64,000 nt of DNA from Adineta vaga (lineage: Eukaryota > Animalia > Rotifera): positions 11,036,001-11,100,000 of the forward strand of contig CP075497.1 in assembly GCA_021613535.1 (NCBI GenBank), given 5' to 3'. The position numbers and the translations under genes were made by a program. Under the pieces are notes generated by a model that made no database searches, was not told the DNA's origin, and saw nothing but the letters and a program-made list of their open reading frames with translations. This document shows, in pieces, positions 22,526-32,508 of this stretch (position 1 is the stretch's first letter; each line of letters begins with the position of its first letter).

Positions 22526-23455
22526 ATGCTAAATATTACAAAGGATTTGACGATAATTCAGACGGAAGTATGGTTTCTTCCATTCGATATTATTATGATT
22601 ATATGTACGTCTTTATCGATTATAGCTGGTCTTCTTTTCTTATTTCTCGCAGTTACAGATCGAACAGGTTGGTCAGTTCAAATGCTTTTAGTTTGTAATT
22701 CATGTTTAGCTGAAATATTTTTAAGTTGCGTATTATTGAGTATGGCAATTTTTACAATACAACAAGATTTAAAGCAAAATACACCTAATATTTCATTCTG
22801 TCGGAGTATAGGTTTTTTAGGCTACGTTTTTGATAGTCTTCAAAATTATTCATATTTTTTAACAGCCATTTATCGCTATATAAGTGTTGTCTATCCAACA
22901 CGAATCGCATGGCAATCAAAAAAATCTCAAATTATTCTTCTTATTATCCAATGGGTGTTTTGTGCCGTTTATGCTTTACCATTATTACTAACTGAACAAA
23001 TAACTTACAATATAGACAATCAAATATGTCAAATTCCTCTTCATTTATCTGTTCCGATAATCTATGTTTCAATAGTGCTTTACTTCATTCCAAATGTTGG
23101 TATTTTTAGTATTTATATTAAACTAACTCGATATGTTCATCAAATGAGTCATCGTACGACAACAACTAATACTTTATTTCATGCACGACGAGAATTAAGA
23201 CTTGTTCAACGTACATTTATTCTTACCAATACTTTGATTATTCTTGGTATTCCGTATGCAATTTTCATTTTTATTTCCTTCTTTACAATACCACCAAAAT
23301 ATCATTTTCGTATTGCATATTTCTTTGCAGATATATCTGTCTTAGCAATTATGATAATATTATACTGTTTTACATCGCAAATTAAAACAAATATTCAACA
23401 GAAATTTAGAACAAGAAATGCAGTTGAGCCTATAGGACAAACAGCTAGAACATAA
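22526..23455 (+). CDS. Intronless rhodopsin-like orphan GPCR
   Basis: 309 aa with seven hydrophobic segments; AIYRYISVVYP (DRY-like), CQIP in ECL2, ILGIPY in TM6. Confidence 0.85.
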   Translation: MLNITKDLTIIQTEVWFLPFDIIMIICTSLSIIAGLLFLFLAVTDRTGWSVQMLLVCNSCLAEIFLSCVLLSMAIFTIQQDLKQNTPNISFCRSIGFLGYVFDSLQNYSYFLTAIYRYISVVYPTRIAWQSKKSQIILLIIQWVFCAVYALPLLLTEQITYNIDNQICQIPLHLSVPIIYVSIVLYFIPNVGIFSIYIKLTRYVHQMSHRTTTTNTLFHARRELRLVQRTFILTNTLIILGIPYAIFIFISFFTIPPKYHFRIAYFFADISVLAIMIILYCFTSQIKTNIQQKFRTRNAVEPIGQTART

Positions 23456-24160: not shown

Positions 24161-27100
24161 TTATTCAACAATGCCTTGTTTAACACGTTCAAGTCGTTGA
24201 CGAAGTAATTCCCGTGTACGTTGGGCTGAAGCATCCACTGGTGTTGATAGAGAAGGAGATGGATCAACTGAAGGTTCAGTTGTTTTATTTGATCGTAATG
24301 CTGCTAATCGAGCATTGACACCAGTTGTATTATTAGCAGTTGTTCCACCATTATTTAAACGAGATTCAAGCTAAATTAATTATAAAAATAAAAGTTTATT
24401 AAAGAATTAAAACTAAATAACATACTTCAACATCAAATGCATCCTAAAAAGAGAATTCGATGAGACAAAAGAAAATAATGACAAAACAAAACAAACTTGT
24501 CCTGTTGTAATTGGAGTTGCAGCAAGACCACATTGTTGACGCATTTGTGTTAGATGTTGTGAATAAACTTGAGGATCAATTGGTGTTGATGATGTTGCAA
24601 ATGTATTACCAAGTTGATCACGAAATTTTTCTTTAATTGCATTCATACGTTTATTATAAATTGCAACGAAATCATCATCTGAAACAGGTTTTTGTTGTTC
24701 AATATTTCCTGATGTTGGTAACGTATCAATCCAAACAAATTGTTCTTTTAATGCACGTAATTTGTCTTCGTGAATTTGTGCATATCTAAAACAAATGTAA
24801 AACTTAGATTTTCAAGTTAAATTGACAAATGATCTTACTGAGAGTAGAATGAACTGGGTGCACCTTGATTTGGCATTGATGTTATTGTTTGTGTTTTATC
24901 TCGAAGAATAGTTGATGATGGTGATGATAAATTTGATGTTGTCGATGTTGCTGTAGCAGTACGTTGATTGTGTACTCGTGCTAAACCTTCATGAATGAAT
25001 TTTTGAAAAGCATCTGCTGTTGTTGCTAAGAATGGATTAATATCCACATTTGGAAAGCGTAATTTGAAATCATATAATTCTTCTAGACCAACTTTAACTT
25101 GATCTCGACGAGCAAATTTTTGAAAAATTGTTTTTAACATTGTTTGATGTTGTTGAGTAACTTGTTCATTATTTATTCCCGATGTTGAAACTGTAAGAGC
25201 TTTTAATTTACGATGAACATAATGGCGCATTTCATCGGAAATTGGTTGTTGATCAGCTGGTATACGTGATAGATCATCAAGAATTGAACGTTGACGTTCG
25301 TCGACTAATTGTTGAAGATAGGTTTTGATTATTCGAAGTGGAAAATCATTTGTTGGAGATGCTTGCCAACGACGTGATGGAAGTTGTTTGAGAAACGATG
25401 ATATTTCAATTAAAATTTGTGTAGCATCGATTTCAGATGGATTATTTTTAAGTGATAATGGAAACATTCGAACCAAACGATAATGACACTACAGAAAGAG
25501 AAGAAAAAATAAGTAGATTTGTGAAATATATAATTTACTTTTAGAACAAGTTTAACAAATGGATCATTAATCGAAAAATCATTTTGAAGACAACATTCAG
25601 TTAAAAGACGAATTAAGGCTGTTAAAACATTGGTCATATGTGCATGTTGTAAAATTTTTAATACAATTACATTAACAATCCGAATAAAATCTTCGTTCGA
25701 TGATGCATCAACTCTTGGTGCTGTATGATGATGATTTGTATTCGTTGAAGGTGTTATTGTTACAACAACGAATGGTAAAAGTACATTGAGTAATTCTTTC
25801 AAAGTATCACGTGTAGCAATTTTAGCGAGATGTGAACGTGAAAAAAGATCAAGTAAAACTGATAGAATGCCACGAAATAAACGTTCAACACTATCACTTG
25901 GTAATGATGAATCATACAAATGATTTTGTTGAGCAATACGTAATTTCATCGAAAGCATACGAAGAAGTTTATCAACATGTTGTTCAAGATAGATACATTT
26001 TGCTGCATCATTAAGGACTTCATCGATTTGTGCTAAAGATGATAAACTATTATTCACTTCATGATCAGCAATAAGTGCAATAACAAGATCAATAGATTGA
26101 CGACAATCAGATGAAGCAGCTAAATATGAAACTGGAATTGATGTAGTAGGTACACTAAATAGATATATGTCAAATTATTCTTTCGAATATTCAAATAAAA
26201 AACAACATACGTTCGTGGTGGTAGATCTGGAAGCTCATAATCATTAGGTAATTCACTTGAAAGTAAATCAGGTAAACGAAGTGCATCCATATGATCATCA
26301 TTGAGTGCCAATTGAAATTGTCCTGGTTTCTTTTCAGTTTTTGATTGCATACGTTGTGCAGCAGCAAGACGTTGTTGATCATCTTCATCTTGCATTGTTG
26401 ATGCTAAATCTGAATCTGTTTCCATTGCTTGTTTTGGTGGTGATGGTGCTGTAGCTGGTCGACCTTTTCCTGGAACGGGTCGACCACCTTTGACTGTTGT
26501 TGCAGCAGCACTACCTGGAGGTGTTTTACCGGTTGCAGCTACATTAGCCTAGAAGAAAATACATCAATAAGGGATGATTGTAAAATAACTTTACGCTTGT
26601 AGATGAAAAACAAGACATACCTTTCCTTTCGCATCTTTTTTCTTATCATCTGTTGTTTCAGCAGCTGCACCAGCTTTGGCACCTACAGCTGGTTTCTTCT
26701 TATTAACAACTGCAGCTCCTTTTGGTGGTGACGATGGTAGTACGTCTTCTTCATCATCATCTCTGTCAGGGATTACAACCTCAGGTTTGACAACAACAAC
26801 AGCACCGCCACCTTTAATAGTTTTTACCACTGTTGGTGCTGGTGGAGGCGGAGCAGCTGAGGGTGGTGGACGAGGTTCACCACGAGAATTGAGTAGAACT
26901 GCTTTTTCTGCATATTCTTTGATCTAAATCAAACGCTATTTAGAACACTTTTTATCTCTTCTGAATTAATTATTACTTTGCTCAGTTTAAGATCATCTAA
27001 ATCCGTTATATTTGGAAGAATATGCTTTTCACCAAGACATTTCCATAACATTCCAAGACTTTCAAATGCACTATCACGTACACTTGGATCTGCATCACCC

Positions 27101-30100
27101 GTATTCTGCAATTACAAATCAACAGATATTCAACATCAGTCACTATTTCGTTCCGATCATCGCTTACCTTAATCAAAGGTGGTAGATACAATTTGAGAAC
27201 TTTTTTAGGTAAAGTTGTTTGTGTCGCCATAGCAAAACATTTGGTGAGAAATTGTTCAGTAGACTGTCGAACAATCGGAGTTTTATGAGCTAATGCTGCA
27301 ACTGCAGTTTCAGCCATTTGTTCGAGATTAGTCTACAAATAAATATATTCAATACATTTTGTTCAATATGAAACAAAAAACATACTCCAGGATAAGCTGC
27401 TTCACATGTTTCACGCAATACTTCAATAACATTGGTTTTCTTTTCTCGAAATCGATCAAAGCATACTTCAAGTACCTAAATAAAAATAGTGAAATAGTTT
27501 CTTTTAGTAAATTTAGCACGATGATATTTACTCCAACAGCATGATTTTTAAATGCTTTTCGTAAACCTTTAGCTAATCCTGTTAAACATTTGGCTGTTAC
27601 AAGAACTACAGGTACATTACTATCTTTTGAAATGATCTAAAAGAAAATGAATCCAATCAGAAATAGAGCAGAAGAAACATAAAGATATTCATCCAAACCT
27701 TGGATAATGCTTTGATCAATTCAAAATAATCACCATCTGTTGCTAATTTTGGATTCTGAGTTAATAAGGTTAATAAATCATCTAAAACTTCTTTTCGATC
27801 TTTCCATTGTTTTGATTCCTATGTAAAAAATAATCAATAGTTTTTAGCGAATAAAGAATGGATCTATTGACACTTACAATTTTTTCAAAGAAATCCTTTG
27901 GTAATCGTTCAAGAATGTTTGCAGCTTCTAACATTTCAAGTGGATCAAGTTCTTCTTGTGCTAAATATATAAAATGAAATTGAATAGAATTGATGATTTC
28001 TGTTAAAAATATACCTTCCGCTTCAACTTCATCAACAGCAACTGATGCAGCTGCACCGCCACTACTTGCACTTGCTTGTCCTTGTTTTTGTTTAGAACTT
28101 TGCTGTGAACGAAGAAAACGAGTTTGTCGTGGTTTATCAGCACCAGTTAGATCTAATTTATCAAACTCAGTTTGTAATTCTTGCATCTACAACAATACAT
28201 CATTCGACATTCCTATGGATCATTTTATGATAATCATACCTGAATAGGTTTAACATTTTGTATCATTGGCATCAGAGTTTGTTTACCGATCCATTTATAG
28301 ATTTCCACAAGTAATAATTTGGCTTCATCACGAACAGTCTTATCTCGATCTTCAAGTAGTGGAACGACTTTAGGAAGGAATGGTTTAATTGGAAGAACTT
28401 TGGAGCCGAATTCTCTGGAAGAACAAAATCGACGATTATGAAATAAATGTAAAGAACATGAGAACGTACGATAATCCTTTTCGAAGAAGTTCAAGACAAG
28501 CTTGAACAATCTTTGGTTGTTTATTTTCCAATCCTTTAACTAATTCGTCTTCAATTTCAGTATTTTTATCAATTTCAATATACATAAGAAGAATATCGAA
28601 TGCACGTTCTTTAATTTTTGCTCTGCCACTAAGACATTTACTAACTAATATTGGAACAATTTCACCAACAGTTCTATTTTATAAAAGAAAAGATAGATGT
28701 CTTTTAAACAAATCTAATCTCTTGAGATACTTACGTTCGTGCAACATAAGCTTCTTGAATGAATATAACTAATGCTTCAAGACCTTTTTCTTTCGCATTT
28801 TCATTAGCATCTAATGCAAATCGTGGTAAAAGATCTAAATAATCTTCAAATTCGCCACTTTTGCTTGAATCTTGTGTCGCAAAAACTTTGCCACATTCTT
28901 CGTAGCCAGCCAAACGTGCATTCCATAACTGGATAAATGAAAATGAATGAATAGAATCGATTGGCATTCTTTTACTTACTTTGTGTTGTACTTTTTCGTC
29001 ACATGGCAATTTCTGCCATTCGGGATCATCAATAGGTTTTTCACTACGAGCCTAAGAAGAACAAAAAAAACGTTCTTAGTGAATAAATTCATTGAAATTC
29101 ATATCTGATAAGCAGAACACTATTGCGTAATTTCTCATAGGAAGCTATAATAATGAAAGATCAAAACAGAAACAGATGCGTGGATACCCAGGAGAAAAAA
29201 AAGAAATCAATTATAATAGAATAATAAATAAAATGAAAGAACAAAGAGAGAGAAAAACAAAGTGTAACAAATGATTAAACAGTCGTTGTATTCGTTAAAA
29301 GAGGAGTAAAATACAAATGTCAAGGCACGATTAAGGAAGAAAAAGAATAAGAAACAAGAAATTTTATCACATAATTTGAATATAAAATTTGCTATGCCGA
29401 TGATTTTTTAATAATTAATGTTGGAATTGATCGCATAGGAATACGACTTTTTGTACTTAGAGTTCCATGAATAGAAGAAGAAATGAGATTGCTTGATGTT
29501 GGACGAGAAATTGAAGGTGGTAATGCTGATGATGGAATTGATCCTTGTGTATTTGTACTACTTATAGATGATGTTGAACCTCCGTTTGACGTTGATTGAC
29601 GTTGGAAATTTAAGGATGGTGAACTCGAGGGTGTGAGCGATGAACGTCGGGCATTGGCTGTTACTGATAGAGTAGATGGTATTGGTTGGGTTGTAAGTAA
29701 AGCATTTGGACGTTGTGTACGGATTTGATTATTGTTTGATATCGATTTTGTTGATGATAATGGAGCAGTTATTGGTCGAACTTTTGATGAATCAAGTTTT
29801 TCATTTGCTGTGGATAAACTTGTAAGAGATGGTTTGGTACGAGAAGAAATCATACGAGATACTGTACCAGTGATCGGAATAGACGCCTGCAATAGCACAC
29901 AAACATATACACGAATGAAAAAAAAAAACGATACTAAAAGGTATATGTATATGTTTGTATGTCTTCATTGAACGAACAAAGAAGAGAACGCACACACAAA
30001 GTAAAATCAAAGAAATAAGGAATGTTCGAAGAGTAAATGTAAAATTAATTAGAGGCAAATTTACCTTTTGAGGTCGTGATTCTCTTTTCTTCTCTTCTAT

Positions 30101-32508
30101 TGGTTCACTAGTTGTTGCTGCTGGTTTAGCTGTTGTCGCTGGTTTTTTCTTTGTGGCAACAGCTGCTGGTTTAGCTGTCGTTGATGGACTTGCTGTTTCC
30201 TCATCTCTATCAGCAGCGATATCTGATTTCGATACTGTTGAACTCGATGGTTTCTTTGTCATTGTTGCTGAATTAATAGATGATGCCGTCGATTTTGGCA
30301 CTGCTGCTGCTACAGAAGCTGTTGAACGAGGTTCTCCACGAGAATTGAGTAGAACTGCTTTTTCTGCATATTCTTTGATCTAAATCAAACGCTATTTAGA
30401 ACACTTTTTATCTCTTCGAATCAATTATTACTTTGCTCAGTTTAAGATCATCTAAATCCGTTATATTTGGAAGAATATGTTTTTCACCAAGACATTTCCA
30501 TAACATTCCAAGACTTTCAAATGCACTATCACGTACACTTGGATCTGCATCACCCGTATTCTGCAATTACAAATCAACAGATATTCAACATCAGTCACTA
30601 TTTCGTTCCGATCATCGCTTACCTTAATCAAAGGTGGTAGATACAATTTGAGAACTTTTTTAGGTAAAGTTGTTTGTGTCGCCATAGCAAAACATTTGGT
30701 GAGAAATTGTTCAGTAGATTGTCGAACAATCGGAGTTTTATGAGCTAATACAGTAGTTGCTACTTCCGATAGTTGTTCAAGATTTGTCTAAATGAAAAAC
30801 GAATTCGTGTTTTTTATTGAAAATAGCTTGCTGAAAATAGTCACCGATGGATATGCAGCATCACATGTTTCACGCAATACTTCAATAACATTGGTTTTCT
30901 TTTCTCGAAACCGATCAAGACATACTTCAAGTACCTAAATAATTATATCGAACAAATAAATATTATTTTCAACATTGAAGAAATACTTACTCCAACAGCA
31001 TGATTTTTAAATGCTTTTCGTAAACCTTTAGCTAATCCTGTTAAACATTTAGCAGCAACAAGGACTACAGGTACATTACTATCTTTGGCAATAATCTATC
31101 CAACAAGAAAATGCATTCAATTATGATAAATCTTCATTTTTTGCATACTTTTTTCAACGCTTTGATCAATTCAAAATAATCACCATCTGCTGCTAGTTTT
31201 GGATTCTGAGTTAATAAGGTTAATAAATCATCCAAAACTTCTTTTCGATCTTTCCATTGTTTCGATTCCTAGAACATTTGTATGTATTCACTAATCAATC
31301 TTGTTTTTTGAGAACTTCATCTTACAATTTTATCGAAGAAATCTTTTGGTAATCGATCAAGAATATTGACAGGTTCCATCATTTCAAATGGATCAAGTTC
31401 TTCTTGCACTAAAATATCAAGAAGACAGTCGACATAGTTCTATATTTATAATTACAAATATATACTTTCAACATTGACATCTTCAACAGCAACCGATGAA
31501 CTAACTGTTGTGGATGCTTGAGTTTGTTCCATTTTTTGTTTAAGATCTTGTTGTGAACGAAGAAAACGAGTTTGTCGTGGTTTATCAGCACCAGTTAGAT
31601 CTAATTTATCAAACTCAGTTTGTAATTCTTGCATCTACAACAATACATCATTTGACATTCCTATGGATCATTTTATGATAATCATACCTGAATAGGTTTG
31701 ACATTTTGTATCATTGGCATCAGAGTTTGTTTGCCGATCCATTTATAGACTTCTACAAGTAATAATTTGGCTTCATCACGAACAGTCTTATCTCGATCTT
31801 CAAGTAGTGGAACAACTTGTTTCAGGAAAGGTTTGATTGGAAGAACTTTGGAACCGAATTCTCTGCAAAAATAAATTCAATAATTATAAGATGCATACGA
31901 AGAATATAGAGGCATACGATAATCCTTTTCGAAGAAGTTCAAGACAAGCTTGAACAATTTTTGGTTGTTTATTTTCCAATCCTTTAACTAATTCTTCTTC
32001 AATATCGACTTGTTTTTCGATTTCAACATACATAAGCAGAATATCGAATGCTCGTTCTTTCATTTTTGTACGTCCATTTAAACATTTACCGATTATTCCT
32101 GGTGCTACTTCACCAACAGTTCTAAATAAAATGCAAATGTGATAATTTACTTCTACAGGAAAAGGAAGAAGAAATTACTTACTTTCCTGCTACTTGTGCT
32201 TCTTCCACAAAGGCAAATACAGCATCCAGTGCTTTTTCTCGAGCATTCTCATTTGTATCAATAACAAATTTTTTTATAAGTCCAAGATATTTACTAAATT
32301 CAGGACTTTTATCTGAATCTTGTGTACGAAATAATTTGACACATTCTTCATATCCAGTTACACGAGCTTTCCATGCCTAAATATCCAGTAAAAAATAAAC
32401 AATGTTAAGTTGTCACTCATTGAATAGTTTAAGTACTTTATGCTGCACTTTTTCATCGCATGGCAATTTTTGCCATTCGTTGTCATCACCACCACCGCTA
32501 GTTGCCAT
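24161..32508 (-). CDS. CKAP5: XMAP215/ch-TOG/Msps microtubule polymerase, long isoform TOG1-TOG2-TOG1'-TOG2'-C-terminal domain
   Basis: [75 protein letters not shown]; C-terminal helical domain (GLEELYDFK..P.VDINPFL...FQKFIHEGL) ending LRQRLERVKQGIVE*. Confidence 0.93.
26870..32490 (-). repeat. Intragenic direct duplication of the TOG1-TOG2 unit (~26870-29051 vs ~30326-32490, offset ~3.45 kb)
   Basis: Near-identical blocks 26870-27294 vs 30326-30749 and 28104-28415 vs 31552-31865, including introns; intron positions are shared throughout. Confidence 0.95.
29392..29886 (-). CDS. CKAP5: Alternative terminal exon of XMAP215: Ser/Thr/Arg-rich tail with SxIP motif
   Basis: Phase-0 acceptor (ttgcag|GCG TCT ATT CCG) matches the phase-0 donor at 30065 (CAA AAG|gtaa). 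Open ~164 codons ending TKSRIPMRSIPTLIIKKSSA*. Confidence 0.7.
   Translation of the reverse strand, partial: ASIPITGTVSRMISSRTKPSLTSLSTANEKLDSSKVRPITAPLSSTKSISNNNQIRTQRPNALLTTQPIPSTLSVTANARRSSLTPSSSPSLNFQRQSTSNGGSTSSISSTNTQGSIPSSALPPSISRPTSSNLISSSIHGTLSTKSRIPMRSIPTLIIKKSSA

Follow-up and report, generated by a model that had tools for sequence, protein, structure and literature searches.

The 64,000-nt stretch of the Adineta vaga genome analysed here (the window; positions 11036001-11100000 of contig 6, in a six-contig genome of 100.8 Mb) carries on its minus strand a locus of the XMAP215/ch-TOG family, which was read directly from the sequence. Behind its first pair of TOG domains lies a terminal exon, the tail exon, that ends shortly after a motif with the form Ser-x-Ile-Pro (SxIP), of the kind bound by the microtubule plus-end protein EB1. 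Comparison with related loci strongly supports the tail exon as a real, translated, terminal coding exon with a conserved SxIP, and the short two-TOG protein that it completes is, judged by its recurrence in sequence, conserved among bdelloids as an independent gene product. Skipping of the tail exon would instead lead into a second pair of TOG domains and a ch-TOG-like C-terminal domain, and the window locus may thus produce a short and a long protein from a single splice donor.

Architecture of the locus

The sequence-only reading had described one donor (30065) facing two in-phase acceptors, of which 29886 was said to open an exon of about 164 residues with SRIP at 29437-29448 followed by a stop, and 29051 to lead to a second TOG1 domain (TOG1'). 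Direct reading bore this out: the coordinates given there, those of SRIP included, are exact, and donor 30065 and the acceptors at exon starts 29886 and 29051 are all in phase 0. Acceptor 29051 opens the first exon of a second copy (copy B), which is the same-length counterpart of exon 1 of the first copy (copy A) with GCT in place of ATG. It is followed 3' by a second TOG1-TOG2 pair, a second linker and a C-terminal region extending to near 24164. The features of the locus are listed below in the order in which they are transcribed, with window positions.

32437-32508, minus strand: copy A exon 1, with its ATG at 32508 directly behind an acceptor (tctag/ATG); encodes MATSGGGDDNEWQKLPCDEKVQHK
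30429-32376, minus strand: copy A TOG1 and TOG2 exons (TOG1 by Pfam PF21041, TOG2 by Msps TOG2, PDB 2QK2)
30379-30065, minus strand: copy A linker exon, basic and Ser/Lys/Ala-rich, last residues ...RESRPQK
30059-30065, minus strand: shared donor, AAG/GTAAAT, phase 0, with the exon end at 30065
29887-30064, minus strand: intron of 178 nt ahead of the tail exon, 3' end ..gtgtgctattgcag (...ttgcag), kept among loci of the same type
29392-29886, minus strand: tail exon, 164 codons plus TAG (coding 29886-29395, TAG 29394-29392)
29437-29451, minus strand: invariant KSRIP, with SRIP itself at 29448-29437
29052-29391, minus strand: spacer of 340 nt; in the short mRNA it would form the 3' untranslated region (3'UTR), and in the predicted long form the distal stretch of a 1013-nt intron
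29090-29112, minus strand: conserved spacer block cttatcagatatgaatttcaatg (consensus TTTATCAGATATTGATTTTGAT)
28980-29051, minus strand: copy B exon 1, 24 codons, encoding ARSEKPIDDPEWQKLPCDEKVQHK, with the acceptor ttcttag immediately 5'
26864-28676, minus strand: copy B TOG1'-TOG2' exons and introns, 85% nucleotide identity to 32124-30320
24164-26120, minus strand: C-terminal region of the predicted long form, whose exon 25476-24838 matches the CKAP5 (ch-TOG) fragment PDB 9F4C

Conservation of the tail exon

A whole-library HMMER search with the 164-residue tail returned 12 matches, 10 of them real, and 14 further relatives came from a word search; nearly all of them are short, fragmentary open reading frames (ORFs) on contigs taken from metagenomes, Logan or ENA. 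The library search found no relatives beyond bdelloid-type fragments, and three longer HMMER matches were rejected as spurious, being bacterial repeat proteins. In the resulting alignment of 21 bdelloid-type tails (A1), the reading frame is intact in 21/21 and KSRIP is invariant in 21/21, with 23 invariant columns overall and a mean column identity of 52%. The stop codon lies within at most three codons of the same place throughout (three residues early in L012), and each relative terminates 14-18 residues past the motif, after ...KSRIP-x-R-x-I...; in the window 14 residues separate SRIP from the TAG, and the C-terminus reads KKSSA. Indels in the tail come in multiples of three, and the pairwise ratio of nonsynonymous to synonymous substitution rates (dN/dS) ranges from 0.18 to 0.69, which is typical for a disordered region with embedded motifs. 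The codons of KSRIP itself differ synonymously (ATT/ATA, CGT/CGC, CCT/CCG), indicating that the constraint acts on the protein. Since a lone SxIP is expected by chance, it is this comparative conservation that establishes the tail as real. The sequence-only reading had set conservation of the ORF and the SxIP in relatives as its own test, and both are conserved.

The basic, serine-rich setting claimed for the motif was likewise recovered. The window tail consists of 26% Ser, 13% Thr and 9% Pro and contains 18 Lys and Arg against 2 Asp and Glu (net charge +16), and its last 24 residues include 5 Lys/Arg and no Asp/Glu. AlphaFold2 applied to the tail alignment gave a mean predicted local distance difference test score of 54.5, a predicted template modelling score of 0.13 and no secondary structure; the tail is therefore predicted to be disordered, and no coiled coil is evident in this prediction. 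A second match to [ST]x[IL]P in the window tail, SALP, is not conserved. Invariant islands other than KSRIP are K.RP.TAP, RRSS and STS..GSTSS.SS..TQ.S.P. The second of these extends to RRSS[FL], which resembles a site for basophilic kinases, and it stands together with a dense Ser/Thr cluster (QRQSTSTGGSTSSLSSTNTQ) at about 29640-29540 of the window. By analogy with the SxIP regions of CLASP, RRSS and the cluster might, speculatively, serve phospho-regulation of the tail.

The SxIP motif and EB1

The published requirements for EB-binding SxIP motifs, summarised in PMC5201023, are an S-x-I-P core behind a basic residue, within surroundings that are disordered, basic and free of acidic residues. 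Honnappa 2009 is reported to describe them as well. In the rotifer tail the core fits [ST]-x-[IL]-P, and what surrounds it is basic, rich in Ser and Pro, predicted to be disordered and without nearby acidic residues; potential partners are encoded in the same genome, where the EBH domain of EB1 (PF03271) was found in two genes, on contigs 4 and 1 (63.1 and 61.9 bits, respectively). From these sequence properties, EB1 is most likely what SRIP binds. A search of the genome for a SLAIN-like adaptor gave no match, which is weak evidence as the search had no working positive control.

A competing explanation is that KSRIP and the basic tail serve something else, be it phospho-regulated binding to the microtubule lattice or to tubulin tails, another partner of short linear motifs, or localisation. 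SxIP-like strings do arise by chance in such a composition, the further invariant islands of the tail are not EB motifs, and basic Ser-rich regions of the two-TOG XMAP215 relatives Stu2 and Alp14 bind the microtubule lattice. Moreover, fission-yeast Dis1 contacts its EB partner through a motif that is not an SxIP (PMC5201023). We nevertheless regard a role unrelated to EB proteins as unlikely, though it is the strongest of the alternatives, given that the invariant core is exactly S-x-I-P, sits behind a basic residue within the acid-free stretch, and coexists with an EBH domain (63 bits) that this genome has kept in well-conserved form.

A second SRIP is located at 25258-25269, within the ch-TOG-like C-terminal domain (..ILDDLSRIPADQQ..). 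It is the sole SRIP of the long form (25269-25258, read on the coding strand), and its context is acidic and probably folded, so it is unlikely to be an EB motif.

A stand-alone paralogue of the short form

The ohnologous chromosome, contig 3, holds at 5811234-5814136 a complete TOG1-TOG2-linker-tail gene. Its ATG follows immediately after an acceptor, a 59-nt intron precedes its tail exon, and its product terminates in ...SKSRIPIRKIPMTIVKKSSA; neither TOG-like sequence nor a C-terminal domain was found 3' of it. Genes of this stand-alone type are also present in L011 and L015, with unrelated genes beginning within about 150 nt. The intron between linker and tail, together with its conserved 3' end, is kept in all loci that have a second TOG pair downstream. 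It has been lost in L012 (1065-1100) and P0022, two lineages of the stand-alone paralogue, in which the short protein is thereby hard-wired.

A maximum-likelihood tree of the tails resolved two clades with 100/99 support. The clade of 11 rows has a second TOG pair downstream wherever the context is known, and the clade of 10 rows never has one. Because stand-alone genes recur and the tail clades track the downstream TOG pair, the short two-TOG SxIP protein is conserved in its own right. The earlier reading of a real tail exon that completes a short form is supported, with the amendment that the short protein is more than a splice isoform: the stand-alone paralogue and its bdelloid orthologues encode it constitutively. 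The extent of the spacer blocks kept by the paralogue further suggests that its chromosome once had a second TOG pair and C-terminal domain and lost them by deletion, rather than never having had them.

Probable connection of the second half to the first

Homologues of exon 29051-28980 were collected from ten further contigs (L007, L008, L013, L014 and L016-L021), giving 11 loci with the window. Nine of the ten hold the tail exon, a spacer of 302-325 nt and the distal exon in this order, L019 being cut within the spacer, and the layout of one donor and two acceptors with a stop in the proximal exon is kept in the 10 contigs that hold all three elements. In 11/11 loci the distal exon begins directly after the acceptor TAG, which is itself an in-frame stop, and translates as [AV]RS[ED]KPIDDPEWQKL from the nucleotide pattern G[CT]N CGN AGT GAN AAA CC...; in none of the 11 does it contain an ATG. 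Exons 1-2 of copy B show a dN/dS of 0.04-0.12 at dS 0.57-0.87. This strong purifying selection starts at the first codon, indicating that the exons are translated in that frame from their first codon onward. On the upstream side, the linker donor is in phase 0 in 13/13 related loci that contain the linker-tail intron, which excludes L012.

No start codon of the second half itself was recovered. Its first in-frame Met lies deep inside TOG1', is not conserved and is preceded by an out-of-frame ATG, and the spacer contains no conserved ATG or ATG-plus-donor exon in the compared loci. Two candidate sources of a start were rejected. An ATG mini-exon can be drawn in the spacer of the window (ATG AGA AAT TAC GCA ATA, then an in-phase GT), but its ATG is missing from the other loci; and the bdelloid spliced leader has no ATG and forms none at the junction. 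As the second half is without any start codon, the second TOG pair and the C-terminal domain are apparently translatable only through skipping of the tail exon. It is thus probable, on the evidence of frame and constraint, that skipping joins ...RPQK to ARSEKP... (ARSEKPIDDPEW) and yields a protein of the order TOG1-TOG2-TOG1'-TOG2'-C-terminal domain. The four-TOG form with the C-terminal domain, postulated from the window alone, accordingly has indirect support in the ATG-less constrained distal exon, the phase-0 donor and the ATG-less spliced leader.

The same lack of a start codon disfavours a division of the locus into two independent tandem genes that would share no donor and involve no splice switch, the second of them starting in a 5' exon that escaped recognition or in some unusual way. 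Such a division has attractions: in the paralogue, TOG1-TOG2-tail suffices as a complete gene; the last 3'UTR block stops some 22-40 nt short of the distal acceptor, much as a trans-splice acceptor would lie behind an upstream poly(A) site; and trans-splicing affects over 50% of bdelloid mRNAs (PMC1925144). Set against an exon that directly follows an in-frame TAG and evolves under constraint from codon one, and against a leader and a spacer that supply no ATG, two separate genes appear improbable, and we prefer a joined transcript with a skipped tail. That the Ser-rich exon is an internal cassette, with an inner donor bypassing the stop and a mere TOG2-TOG1' linker as its product, is hardly credible despite a few phase-0 GT dinucleotides inside it, because such inner donors as can be proposed are weak and lack conservation, 21/21 tails keep as their C-terminus the stop and the 14-18 residues that follow KSRIP, and the paralogue has no exon to splice to. 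An assembly artefact was rejected as the cause of the internal duplication, as independent assemblies show the same arrangement and the two copies are 15% divergent.

The spacer and a probable 3' end for the short mRNA

Three blocks of the spacer are common to the window and the 3' flank of the stand-alone genes, namely GATCATGTGATA just past the stop, CTTCCACTTTATTTATTAT, and TTTATCAGATATTGATTTTGAT (29112-29090); several additional blocks are limited to the two-part loci. In the window the last common block, TTTATCAGATATTGATTTTGAT, stops about 40 nt short of the distal acceptor (about 22-36 nt short of it in related loci), and it is also found where a second TOG pair does not follow. Because the next gene begins shortly past this block in stand-alone genes, the block probably indicates where the short mRNA ends, and we consider it a candidate 3'-end element. 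The spacing of block and acceptor fits 3'-end formation in competition with splicing. It is also expected of a downstream trans-spliced gene, the main rival to the splice switch, against which the missing start codon speaks. In the paralogue (L005 8137-8400, contig 3) the spacer blocks are kept until just before the position of the distal acceptor, where the similarity stops.

Duplication history and likely origin of the distal acceptor

Within the genome, the TOG pairs at 30320-32124 and 26864-28676 share about 85% nucleotide identity with introns included. Between the window and L013, identity is about 81% for orthologous TOG-pair copies and about 76% in cross comparisons; exons 1-2 lie outside this homogenisation. 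The TOG pairs thus evolve in concert, which suggests that gene conversion has acted repeatedly on the stretch from exon 3 as far as the beginning of the linker exon.

The known bdelloid spliced leader, which carries no ATG, was found in 59 gene copies in the genome and in none in the control. It is 23 nt long (TGCTTATTACAACTTACCAAGAG, and variants with one further change). Its copies are mostly arranged as head-to-head pairs about 154 nt apart and clustered on contig 5; examples are L022-L024 (contig 1: 2551160-2551336). The acceptor abutting the ATG of copy A is probably a spliced-leader acceptor. In copy B exon 1, the position of that ATG reads GCT, GTA or GTT across loci.

The two-part locus probably originated by tandem duplication of the 5' part of a gene trans-spliced to the leader. 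An acceptor once placed directly before the ATG of the duplicated first exon would have turned into an ordinary cis acceptor, after which the ATG would have been lost. As far as the layout of the exons can tell, the distal acceptor is likely the former trans-splice acceptor of the duplicated first exon.

Family membership

The window gene is assigned to XMAP215/ch-TOG by several matches. PF21041, the TOG1 of XMAP215 type, was detected on exon 32376-32182 (1.2e-17) and exon 31876-31685 (8.9e-17), and genome-wide its matches are confined to the window locus and the one paralogous locus on contig 3. The TOG2 exons 31268-31137 and 30787-30620 are collinear with residues 25-66 and 129-183 of Msps TOG2 (2QK2), with E values of 4.8e-5 and 0.018, respectively. 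The N-terminus is of XMAP215 type (DDxEWxKLP...). Exon 25476-24838, which would be used in the long form only, matches the solved C-terminal fragment of CKAP5/ch-TOG (9F4C) with an E value of 2.4e-11, and the C-terminal region is single-copy in the genome. Pfam gave no match on the tail or on the C-terminal exons. The five-TOG layout of animal members was not found: with no other PF21041 match genome-wide, the arrangements seen were TOG1-TOG2 and TOG1-TOG2-TOG1'-TOG2' only. Nor were TOGs of CLASP type or a C-terminal CLIP-interacting domain found, the best matches of solved structure being Msps TOG2 and the CKAP5 C-terminus. On these grounds the gene is a bdelloid XMAP215/ch-TOG locus and encodes a putative microtubule polymerase. 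Just downstream of it, at 22526-23455 on the plus strand, lies an intronless gene for a 309-residue G-protein-coupled receptor of the rhodopsin family (PF00001, 1.8e-13).

Proposed mechanism

We propose that use of the tail exon, with the mRNA ending within about 340 nt behind it, would give the short two-TOG protein. This form, like the paralogue, would be built from a pair of tubulin-binding TOGs, a basic linker and a tail that is basic and disordered, whose invariant SxIP would dock in the EBH pocket of EB1 and thereby recruit the protein directly to growing plus ends. Were the exon skipped (30065 to 29051), the product would carry four TOGs and the ch-TOG C-terminal domain, without the basic SxIP tail. 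The choice between the two would be one of 3'-end formation competing against splicing. That the window locus makes both forms by exon choice, and that the SRIP of the short form docks on EB1, is a combination which we favour by a modest degree. Pairing of two short molecules by an EB1 dimer is speculation.

Several points weigh against this scheme. The long form requires a 1013-nt intron, and the other introns of the gene measure about 50-180 nt. Behind the tail exon of the window there is no canonical AATAAA, and the putative poly(A) site is placed solely by the blocks shared with the stand-alone paralogue. Word searches with tail and linker returned ORF fragments of genomic contigs and no spliced transcript, besides one truncated gene model labelled Rotaria sp. 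Silwood2, and a search of JGI metagenome contigs with the pattern of copy B exon 1 gave six matches, all genomic; genomic origin holds for every related contig recovered. As for the motif, at least one [ST]x[IL]P occurs in 66% of 20,000 composition-preserving shuffles of the tail (P about 0.66) and in the last 30 residues of 16% of them; the overall dN/dS of the tail is only moderately below 1; and the invariance of KSRIP demonstrates constraint, not the identity of a partner.

Taken at its fullest, the proposal is that in bdelloid rotifers the polymerase carries an EB1 hook of its own. A two-TOG XMAP215 monomer bearing a canonical C-terminal SxIP would be recruited by the EB1 dimer, which might also pair it into a four-TOG unit, and it would replace adaptors of the SLAIN/Sentin type; at one of the two paralogous loci it would alternate with a four-TOG form bearing the ch-TOG C-terminal targeting domain of the TACC type, by means of a distal acceptor that was once the spliced-leader acceptor of a duplicated first exon. 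We put this complete picture forward tentatively, as less likely than not.

Comparison with known systems

In the paper library searched, no paper was found that treats rotifer and XMAP215 together, and a two-TOG XMAP215 form with a conserved KSRIP tail has not been described; it would be new to the family. Coupling of XMAP215 to EB1 depends on lineage, with adaptors in vertebrates and flies and an odd direct motif in fission yeast, and a canonical SxIP would be a third solution. The rotifer system would test whether direct EB tethering substitutes for extra TOGs or for dimerisation, and its paired loci provide a built-in evolutionary comparison between a short-only gene and an apparent switch between the short and the four-TOG protein. 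If true, the step from spliced-leader acceptor to internal acceptor that followed the tandem duplication would offer a simple and general route to in-frame fusion in trans-splicing animals.

As a gene structure, the locus resembles an alternative last exon: a single donor faces a pair of acceptors, and the proximal exon provides its own stop and a predicted 3'UTR. It differs in that the distal acceptor apparently derives from a spliced-leader acceptor, and use of both paths is predicted from the sequence.

With XMAP215, ch-TOG (CKAP5) and Msps the rotifer proteins share the XMAP215-type N-terminus, TOG1, TOG2 and the basic linker, to which the long form would add the ch-TOG C-terminal domain. 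Animal members, however, have five TOGs and no known SxIP, and their contact with EB1 is mediated by adaptors, SLAIN2 for ch-TOG and Sentin for Msps. The rotifer short form and paralogue have two TOGs, the predicted long form has two plus two near-identical ones, and the short form carries an SxIP of its own.

Dis1 also has two TOGs, and its tail contacts the EBH pocket without an adaptor, as predicted for the rotifer tail. Its direct binding to Mal3/EB1 uses an unconventional motif (L841, P844, F847) and no SxIP (PMC5201023). Dis1 in addition has a dimerising coiled coil, of which the rotifer tail shows no sign. CLASP offers the nearest functional precedent for a built-in EB hook, with TOGs followed by a basic, Ser-rich, disordered SxIP region. 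It belongs to another TOG subfamily and suppresses catastrophe rather than polymerising, whereas the TOGs and the C-terminus of the rotifer locus are of the XMAP215/CKAP5 type.

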